A stretch of DNA of 63,461 bases, counting the filler, from Olpidium bornovanus S191 (taxonomy: Eukaryota > Fungi > Olpidiomycota): the NCBI GenBank assembly GCA_017911155.1. It is 31 parts of 31 records of this genome, joined end to end, with 100 filler letters (N's around TTAATTAATTAA, not from the genome) between each part and the next. Parts side by side here need not be neighbours in the genome. Positions count along the whole stretch, not along the records: positions 27,817 to 29,705 come from JAEFCI010012104.1; 30 more parts are not named here. One strand, given 5' to 3'. The notes below the pieces were generated by a model. That model did not search any database. It was not told the DNA's origin and saw only the letters and a list, made by a program, of their open reading frames with translations. Each line of letters opens with the position of its first letter. The stretch's first letter is position 1. A program made the translations under genes and the position numbers. Of the stretch, positions 27,692 to 29,865 are shown in pieces.

Positions 27692-28316
27692 GGGCCCTCT
27701 TTTCCCTCCCCCCCCCNNNNNNNNNNNNNNNNNNNNNNNNNNNNNNNNNNNNNNNNNNNNTTAATTAATTAANNNNNNNNNNNNNNNNNNNNNNNNNNNN
27801 NNNNNNNNNNNNNNNNCATGTCCCTGGAAGGTTGCCGCAAAATCCGCCTTGGAGGACGAAAAAAGAAACGAACACGAGAAACGGGACGCGGAACAAGGGA
27901 AGCGCAGCTGTTCACCGTAACAAAAACACCGTGGAACTTGCATCTGCAAGAAGCGAGTGTAGAACCAGCGATCAGGTCGATGGCGCTGAGATTCTAACCT
28001 CCGCCTGAGTTCTGGATGGAGGTGTCGGTTGATGAGTGTCAGCAAAGGAGACCGGCAAAGTCACGACGTGATCTCACATCGAAGTCTGCACATCAGGGAT
28101 CGTCTCATTCGCTGTGGGCAACGGGAAGCGCGCAAAGCTGTTAATTAGCAGAAACAAAATTAACTTCGTTGAAATCGCAGCGGTCGCCGTCAGACACCCA
28201 CAAAAAACTCAGAATCCGCAACGGTCTCAAGCAATTAACACCAAACGAAACGACCAGCTGCGCTTCTCTAATTTGTCGCAAACCACATCTGTTCCCTCCG
28301 GCCCCTGGTGTGATTC

Positions 28317-28675
28317 GCCGCAAAACAGAAAACGGAAGTTTCAGGCTAAGCTCCCCGGAAATAAACAGAAAGTTTTTTCTGGGGCACTCTCTAGACTGCA
28401 CACATCCCTTGCAAACTGCTATAGAAACTCTAGCCTTTTTCAGCGCGCAATCCAGTAAAAATTCTTTCCCCTTCCCTTCTTGCCGTTGGCTCATAACGTG
28501 GTTTGCCGCAAAACAGAAAACGGAAGTTTCAGGCTAAGCTCCACCGGGATAAACAGGAAGTTTTTACTGGGGCTCTCTCTCCACTACACAGACTCCTTGC
28601 GCTGCTGTAGAAACTGTAGCCTTTTTAGCGCGGAATTCAGTAGTAAAAATTTTTTTCCTTTCCCTTTTTGCCGTA
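28317..28675. repeat. Diverged ~188-bp tandem duplication covering the 3' end and 3' flank of the peptide gene
   Basis: GCCGCAAAACAGAAAACGGAAGTTTCAGGCTAAGCTCC at 28317 and 28505; similarity continues to TTGCCGT in both copies. Confidence 0.9.
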
Positions 28676-28849
28676 AAAGCCTTTTTTGCGGAAACCTTTC
28701 TTGCCGAAACCTTTTTTGCCGTAGCCCTTCCCCTCTTTGTAGTAGCCGCCGGAAGGAAAAGGCTCCGGGGCGGGATCGGGGTTGGGCTCCGCACACGCCA
28801 CCTGGGCGAGGACGGTGACGGCGAAGCCTATGATGACGGTGAACTTCAT
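28637..28849 (-). CDS. 70-aa secreted prepropeptide: signal peptide, six X-Pro dipeptides, then a cationic Gly/Lys/aromatic repeat peptide
   Basis: ATG-to-stop intronless ORF MKFTVIIGFAVTVLAQVACA-EPNPDPAPEPFP-SGGYYKEGKGYGKKGFGKKGFRKKGFYGKKGKEKNFYY. Confidence 0.85.
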   Translation of the reverse strand: MKFTVIIGFAVTVLAQVACAEPNPDPAPEPFPSGGYYKEGKGYGKKGFGKKGFRKKGFYGKKGKEKNFYY

Positions 28850-29865
28850 CCTTCCGAGAGTTTAAGGGAACGCGACCACCCGCAAAACAGGGGGTTCTTT
28901 ATTTCCTGCAACGGGGCGTTAACAAGTGGTTCAGAAGCGCCGGGTTCGCGGGGAAAGAGTTCCCGGTTCAAGACAATGATTTCATTCAAAAACAATCCCG
29001 GCTTCGTTTGGTTTTTGCGGAAACGTTCGCGCGGAAGCAAAATCCGCTTTTTCCGATCTCAGCCAGCTCGTTCATCCTTCAGTCGGAATCGGCAGGTAAT
29101 AAAAAAAAAACACACTACAATAAAACCATTGTCCATGTTACCTCTTGGGCAATGGATTTTTGTCGGGCGGGGCTTGGGGGCAAGCCAAACCGCAACGGCC
29201 GTCGGCGGGGTTTTATACGCCTCGGGAGCGGGCGGCACGAGTTTCTGACCTGGGCAAGACTGGGTCGTCTTTGTCAGCCCCCGTCCCTGCGGCGCCAGTT
29301 CCTCAAAAGGTCGCGTCGCCGCGAAAAAAAAAAAATAAACTTGACGAGCTGGTTTTCCGCAAAAGCACGCTGCCCTGGGAAAAACGGGACGAGGTAGGCC
29401 GGGCCCCTTTTTCCCCTGCTGCCGCGCGCGACCTTCCCCGCGCGGCGCACGTTGTCTCAACCTGTGGCGGAACGGATCGCCGCCTTTGGATCGCCCGACA
29501 TTTGCAGGGGCAACGAACTTGAACGCGGGGGGCGTGCGGCGCTCATGTCGGTCTCCCTCGAAGCATTCCCCGCTCCCCTCCCCTCCCCGCCCCTCCCCGC
29601 TCCGCCCCACCGTCCTCCCGACCGACCCGCAATCATGGGTGCTTCGGGCCGGTCACCGACCGCACTCCGCACGCCTTTGTCCGCCGAAGTTCGCACATCA
29701 GATGGNNNNNNNNNNNNNNNNNNNNNNNNNNNNNNNNNNNNNNNNNNNNTTAATTAATTAANNNNNNNNNNNNNNNNNNNNNNNNNNNNNNNNNNNNNNN
29801 NNNNNCCCCCTCCTCTCACTCCTGCCCGCCTGCCCGCCCCTTCCCCCCCGCCCTATCCGCTCACC

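Follow-up and report, generated by a model that had tools for sequence, protein, structure and literature searches.

A candidate secreted prepropeptide of Olpidium bornovanus S191 with an in-register X-Pro run and a lysine-, glycine- and aromatic-rich repeat tail

Does a short stretch of the genome of Olpidium bornovanus S191 encode a small cationic peptide that is secreted and released from its precursor by the removal of X-Pro dipeptides, and, if so, what kind of peptide would this be? The question is raised by an open reading frame (ORF) on the minus strand at positions 28637–28849 of the window, that is, of the whole 63,461-nucleotide stretch of joined genome parts from which it was taken. 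Our analysis is an unspliced reading of the single piece that carries this ORF (27817–29705, 1889 nt; JAEFCI010012104.1). The original prediction described it as a melittin-style prepropeptide, and its translation was recovered residue for residue, as 70 codons followed by a TGA stop (28637–28639) in a single exon. The product can be divided into a signal-like N-terminus, a run of six X-Pro dipeptides and a basic, repetitive tail. Five codons before the ATG the frame is closed by a TAA (28862–28864, minus strand), so that the ORF has no 5′ extension unless it is spliced. The ATG stands in a reasonable context, with A at −3, and a TATA-like box, AAATAAAG, is found on the same strand 48–55 nt upstream of it (28897–28904), where it may act as a promoter element. 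About 85 nt past the stop there is an AGTAAA, near which a transcript of the gene would be expected to end. An extension by splicing at the 3′ end was also considered and is unlikely, since the last 55 nt of the coding sequence contain no GT and the downstream copy of this region, described below, sits behind a stop.

Residues 1–20 (28790–28849, minus strand) are predicted to form a signal peptide, both by the usual rules for n-, h- and c-regions and by structure modelling. The n-region is Met-Lys, the hydrophobic core comprises 13 residues, and the c-region, QVACA, places an A-x-A motif directly before the expected cut, while the AlphaFold model of the prepropeptide has a helix at residues 3–19 with pLDDT values of 76–82. 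Cleavage would thus fall after Ala20, at A-C-A|E. An alternative site, V-L-A|Q, after residue 15, would leave the X-Pro run out of register, and on the sequence this site appears less likely than the one after Ala20. The pairs V17-A18 and C19-A20 are themselves X-Ala dipeptides in the same register as the X-Pro run, a point on which the earlier description is corrected.

Directly after A-C-A, at residue 21, begins the run EP NP DP AP EP FP (codons 21–32; 28754–28789, minus strand; net charge −3), which may be a pro-piece or else a Pro-rich spacer. It had been claimed that exactly six X-Pro dipeptides follow the predicted cleavage at VACA|E, and this is what we find, with the whole run in register with that site: Pro occupies every second residue, none is placed at P1′, and the series ends at Ser-Gly. 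DPP-IV/Ste13-type enzymes do not cut at Ser-Gly, which is an established feature of their specificity. Both the layout and the register therefore hold for the proposal that the segment is suited to stepwise removal by a dipeptidyl aminopeptidase, and we consider such trimming plausible from the sequence and from analogy with processed precursors. The run is not a repeat at the DNA level, as its six Pro codons differ at the wobble position (CCC, CCC, CCC, CCG, CCT and CCT) and Tandem Repeats Finder (TRF) reported no tandem array in it. The further suggestion that an acidic pro-piece keeps the peptide inactive fares poorly, because a charge of −3 set against one of +11 in the tail makes masking by charge unconvincing.

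The remaining 38 residues (codons 33–70; 28640–28753, minus strand) consist of 12 Lys, 1 Arg, 2 Glu, 11 Gly, 6 Tyr, 4 Phe, 1 Ser and 1 Asn. The tail contains no Cys and has a net charge of +11, a pI of 10.1, 29% Gly and ten aromatic residues, in agreement with the composition first given for it. The account of the tail as built from GKKG(F/Y) repeats also stands: a five-residue repeat is its dominant periodicity, and at the DNA level TRF reports a 15-nt (five-codon) in-frame tandem repeat of 3.6 copies at 28665–28721 (minus strand), with units GxGKK, GFGKK, GFRKK and GFYGKK. The only indel among these units is of 3 nt. Of the six minimal changes between them, four are synonymous and affect third codon positions, while the remaining two are Tyr/Phe and Gly/Arg; as a sign of coding, this wobble-position bias is suggestive but weak (about p = 0.1). 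Aliphatic residues are absent altogether (no Leu, Ile, Val or Ala), as is Trp, and the maximal helical hydrophobic moment of the tail, 0.38, was reached by 772 of 2000 shuffled sequences. Outside the signal helix the AlphaFold model is coil, with pLDDT values of 56–65, and the tail is accordingly predicted to be disordered.

Whether such an ORF is a gene at all has to be weighed against the rival explanation that it is spurious, a chance open frame without any product in low-complexity, motif-laden and duplicated intergenic DNA. Positions 28584–28794 are open in all three minus-strand frames and in one plus-strand frame, and where several overlapping frames are open, an open frame alone means little. 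The longer ORFs of the piece (114–183 aa) look like noise and are plainly non-coding, which favours a spurious origin for this one too, and a pick from a very large scan favours rare coincidences. The prepropeptide ORF nevertheless stands apart from the others in two tests. As a null we used a first-order Markov model of the piece, from which 3000 simulations yielded 11,606 ATG-initiated ORFs of at least 60 aa, and scored them with a crude signal rule, which asked for basic residues in the n-region, for 12 consecutive uncharged residues averaging at least 2 on the Kyte-Doolittle scale, and for small residues at −1 and −3. Only 0.14% of the simulated ORFs passed this rule, and among the real ORFs of the piece the prepropeptide ORF alone did so; its signal-like N-terminus is, moreover, not of low complexity. 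Runs of at least four X-Pro dipeptides occurred in 0.25% of the simulated ORFs, and runs of at least six in none of them. The GC content at first, second and third codon positions is 0.49/0.41/0.69 over the whole ORF and 0.66/0.47/0.81 over codons 1–32 (permutation p = 0.013). When 96-nt windows on both strands are compared, the phase-specific GC contrast is highest at the third positions of the prepropeptide ORF. Such a marked third-position excess is confined to this ORF, the ten other ORFs of at least 60 aa on the piece having flat profiles. Chance is, on these figures, an unlikely source of the ORF. No further region of the 1.9-kb piece is convincing as coding sequence.

The DNA around the 3′ end of the ORF has been duplicated, which the proponent of a spurious frame may count in favour of that view and which suggests an unstable locus. 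A tandem duplication of 188 nt, with units that are 83–85% identical, takes in the last 12 codons together with about 140 nt of 3′ flank. The unit that includes the end of the ORF occupies 28498–28674, as delimited by self-BLAST and repeat analysis, and the downstream copy, from self-BLAST, occupies 28310–28497 (both on the minus strand). The coding remnant of the downstream copy (28440–28490) reads ANGKKGRGKNFYWIAR and then a stop; it lies behind an in-frame stop and is therefore a dead fragment, 188 nt downstream of the part of the tail that it duplicates. At the duplication junction, CGGCAAA is common to the coding repeat and the unit end, a microhomology that suggests slippage or unequal exchange. 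A block of 38 nt is identical in both units (28317–28354 and 28505–28542), in spite of the overall identity of some 83–85%; either gene conversion or conservation as a 3′ element could account for this. A structured RNA in the duplicated 3′ flank was rejected (z-scores of +1.2 and +0.9), and the block shows no notable RNA fold. Short matches had also hinted at a tandem gene array of 1.2–1.6 kb, but self-BLAST shows the 188-nt duplication only. At the left edge of the piece, a stretch at 27828–27872 weakly resembles the coding tail in inverted orientation (self-BLAST, 71% over 45 nt, E 0.03) and may be a remnant, now decayed, of a second, oppositely oriented copy.

A further feature of the piece is the 8-mer CCGCAAAA, which occurs at seven sites in 1889 nt against 0.34 expected, a count that was reached in none of 3000 simulations. 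The sites are at 27835, 28318, 28506, 28880 and 29357 on the plus strand and at 29020 and 28691 on the minus strand; five are left after the ORF and one duplicate copy are removed, and GTTT or GGTT often precedes the motif. On the sequence, it may be a regulatory site or the core of a dispersed repeat. One site falls within the coding repeat, so that a repeat unit of the supposed gene contains a motif common in the non-coding flanks too, and the over-represented motif, like the 15-nt repeat tail and the 188-nt duplication, lends some support to a spurious frame. The idea that the coding repeat is simply a copy of the flank motif is, however, weakened, given that the exact match is restricted to the Arg-containing unit and that the repeat consensus, CGGCAAAA, is one base off CCGCAAAA. 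Elsewhere in the piece we noted a C-rich tract with periods of 5, 10 and 15 (CCCCT/CCCCG units) at 29567–29619, within a stretch of 71% GC, and two homopolymer runs, A10 at 29101–29110 and A12 at 29324–29335.

Searches for relatives were blank. A Pfam scan of the prepropeptide at E values up to 10 returned no family, Melittin included, and a word-index search of 5.8 billion proteins returned no relative; an exact-sequence look-up found neither the prepropeptide nor two neighbouring ORFs on record. Phmmer gave no hit at E ≤ 0.001 among 1.84 billion protein representatives, a search in which the composition filter of HMMER may hide relatives of low complexity. The ESM Atlas had no match for the whole prepropeptide or for residues 21–70, back-translated scans of metagenome and prokaryotic genome contigs held no relative, and the sole match among PDB sequences, a designed helical repeat protein aligned to the signal region (E 0.008), is meaningless. 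The one hit of these scans on a viral contig was rejected as a relative: it is a 406-aa phage protein, encoded on an IMG/VR contig (L001:1906–3126), that carries NPDPAPEP by chance in its acidic C-terminal tail. At the nucleotide level, the 28-nt core of the conserved 3′ block was not matched in metagenome, prokaryotic genome or viral contigs, and Rfam had nothing in the piece. Comparison of the piece with plasmids and of the prepropeptide with phages gave no match, and a literature search for peptide strings of the prepropeptide and for CCGCAAAA found neither. The statement that no described family is recognisable thus holds across Pfam, phmmer, the ESM Atlas and the metagenome searches. For a peptide of 70 residues, half of it of low complexity, such blank results indicate that no described family fits, and undiscovered relatives are possible.

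The absence of any relative and of a recorded gene call is what a spurious frame would predict, and without a homologue or paralogue in any search conservation gives the gene no support; in addition, the tail is low-complexity DNA. Taking these points together with the signal-like N-terminus, the X-Pro run and the third-position GC excess, and after allowing for the very large scan, we judge from the sequence that the ORF is probably a real, single-exon gene for a secreted peptide. A spurious frame is an unlikely explanation, though one that still has to be reckoned with.

The reading that we prefer, which we put at about even chances, is that of an orphan, lineage-restricted secreted prepropeptide from which a disordered, sticky polycation, rather than a peptide of the melittin type, is released by X-Pro trimming. 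It draws on sequence features, the structural model and analogy. Signal peptidase would cut after Ala20, and a dipeptidyl aminopeptidase of the DPP-IV/Ste13 type would then strip EP, NP, DP, AP, EP and FP in turn and halt at Ser33-Gly, freeing a polycation of 4.4 kDa with a pI of about 10. The freed peptide would be intrinsically disordered, with Gly between its aromatic residues and Lys beside them, and would most likely bind anionic surfaces or polymers through multivalent electrostatic and cation–pi contacts; cell walls, matrix, microbial envelopes and nucleic acids are candidate targets. Such a peptide could act in the wall as an adhesive or a coacervate, or could be an antimicrobial of the Gly-rich, non-helical kind, and would not be a pore former of the melittin type. 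Judged by analogy, an adhesive or matrix role is a tentative suggestion, an antimicrobial role is possible but on the unlikely side, and a host-directed effector role seems improbable.

Two other explanations share with the preferred reading the premise that the gene is real, and overlap with it to that extent. The first concerns the fate of the X-Pro stretch, which might be retained in a real secreted peptide as a rigid, acidic, Pro-rich spacer, or, if the sequence came from a plant or alga, serve as a hydroxyproline glycosylation module of the kind found in arabinogalactan peptides and Lys-rich arabinogalactan proteins (AGPs). Alternating X-Pro motifs are common as linkers, and the NPDPAPEP of the phage protein shows that this very motif also exists in a plain acidic linker that has no connection with secretion, which weighs against the pro-piece and favours a spacer. 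Tick GRP77, too, combines an acidic N-part and a basic C-part without trimming (PMC11794139). A retained spacer does not, on the other hand, account for a run whose first residue coincides with the predicted signal cleavage and which is in register with it. As for the glycomodule variant, AGPs are defined by Ala/Ser/Thr-Pro glycomodules and a C-terminal GPI-anchor signal, X in these arabinogalactan modules being typically Ala, Ser or Thr. Here X is E, N, D, A, E and F, and the protein ends in KEKNFYY, without a hydrophobic C-terminal GPI signal. That the stretch is retained in either form appears decidedly unlikely, while trimming, provided that the gene is a real secreted-peptide gene, seems by analogy slightly better than an even prospect. 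The second, a promembranolytic antimicrobial peptide held inactive by its acidic X-Pro pro-piece and made membrane-active through stepwise trimming by a DPP-IV/Ste13-type enzyme, can claim the signal peptide, the in-register run, the charge of +11 and a precursor laid out like that of promelittin (Kreil 1980, cited by PMC5778000), but is highly doubtful, because a tail without aliphatic residues, with 11 Gly, a shuffle-level helical moment and a coil prediction is unlikely to form pores as an amphipathic helix, because a pro-piece of −3 cannot mask such a charge, and because the Pfam scan at E values up to 10 gave no match.

Returning to the sticky polycation released by trimming, we may ask what its discovery would add. 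As it stands, the locus is one more orphan candidate for a small secreted peptide on a short contig, of moderate interest and holding no surprise for the specialist. If expressed, it would offer a compact, easily synthesised 38-mer with which to examine post-signal dipeptidyl-aminopeptidase pro-pieces outside insects and Yarrowia, a test of whether a microbial eukaryote uses Lys/Gly/aromatic repeat peptides for adhesion, coacervation or antimicrobial action, and a clean example of a very young gene formed by in-frame repeat expansion. It may even found an undescribed class of secreted, X-Pro-trimmed 'sticker-and-spacer' polycations of microbial eukaryotes, possibly of early-diverging fungi, acting as an extracellular glue, coacervate, wall-crosslinker or non-helical antimicrobial and arising by recent expansion of the 15-nt unit, with motif-rich non-coding DNA as the possible source of a de novo origin; this is a speculation to which we attach a low probability.

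Among known systems, the candidate may be assigned on its sequence to the small, repetitive cationic peptides that are secreted with a pro-piece of the dipeptidyl type, and it has no sequence family. Armadillidin, the ctenidins, the acanthoscurrins and the shepherins are Gly-rich, cationic, repetitive, non-helical antimicrobial peptides released from precursors, and the tail presumably resembles such Gly-rich repeat peptides. They are, however, dominated by His, Arg or Gly and contain far fewer Lys than this tail, and no sequence relation to them was found.

With promelittin and other hymenopteran prepropeptides processed by DPP-IV (the processing precedent being that of Kreil 1980, again as cited in PMC5778000) the ORF shares its order of parts, namely a signal, a Glu/Asp-rich run of X-Pro and X-Ala dipeptides and a short, cationic, Cys-free peptide. 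The sequence features of precursors processed by dipeptidyl aminopeptidases, a class drawn by function rather than homology, recur in it: an N-terminal secretory signal by the n/h/c-region rule with A-x-A, and a dipeptide run that is in register and terminates at a non-substrate residue, as in promelittin. There is no sequence similarity to the promelittin type, and the six dipeptides here are all X-Pro. The mature peptides also differ, in that melittin forms an amphipathic helix, whereas the tail described here is repetitive, non-amphipathic and made of Gly, Lys and aromatic residues. The label 'melittin-style' therefore suits the precursor layout and does not suit the mature peptide.

The fungal Ste13 systems, which include the Yarrowia lipolytica protease AEP (Xpr2), alpha-pheromone and the KEPs, are alike in that a Golgi dipeptidyl aminopeptidase removes X-Ala and X-Pro dipeptides, Ste13 itself taking off XP and XA (PMC9769878). 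In AEP, as here, the X-Ala/X-Pro stretch directly follows the presequence (PMC10095220), although what comes after it there is a large pro-domain, which has a Lys-Arg site, and an enzyme. In KEPs and alpha-factor the motif comes after Kex2 sites, and core peptides are repeated between KR or RR sites (PMC9769878). In contrast to all of these, the present ORF has no KR or RR in its 70 residues, only KK pairs and one RKK, and would yield a single product, so that it falls outside the KEPs as they are defined (PMC9769878).

In composition and patterning, the tail is closest, by analogy, to the Gly-spaced cation/aromatic proteins that act as adhesives or coacervates, such as tick GRP77, mussel foot proteins 3 and 5 and sandcastle-worm Pc-1/2, which are likewise small, secreted, basic and disordered, with Gly-spaced aromatic residues beside cationic ones. 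Its composition, five-residue periodicity and coil prediction place it in this class, which is a compositional one. Mfp-5, for instance, is a small protein with much Gly, Lys and Tyr/DOPA (PMC9783952), and GRP77, which carries a signal peptide, joins an acidic N-part to a Gly-spaced cationic/aromatic C-part, undergoes phase separation through cation–pi contacts, and is adhesive (PMC11794139). Lys exceeds Arg in the tail, whereas Arg is the main driver in GRP77, and the peptide is shorter, at 38 aa. The ORF has no homology to any member of this group, of which all known examples are animal proteins.
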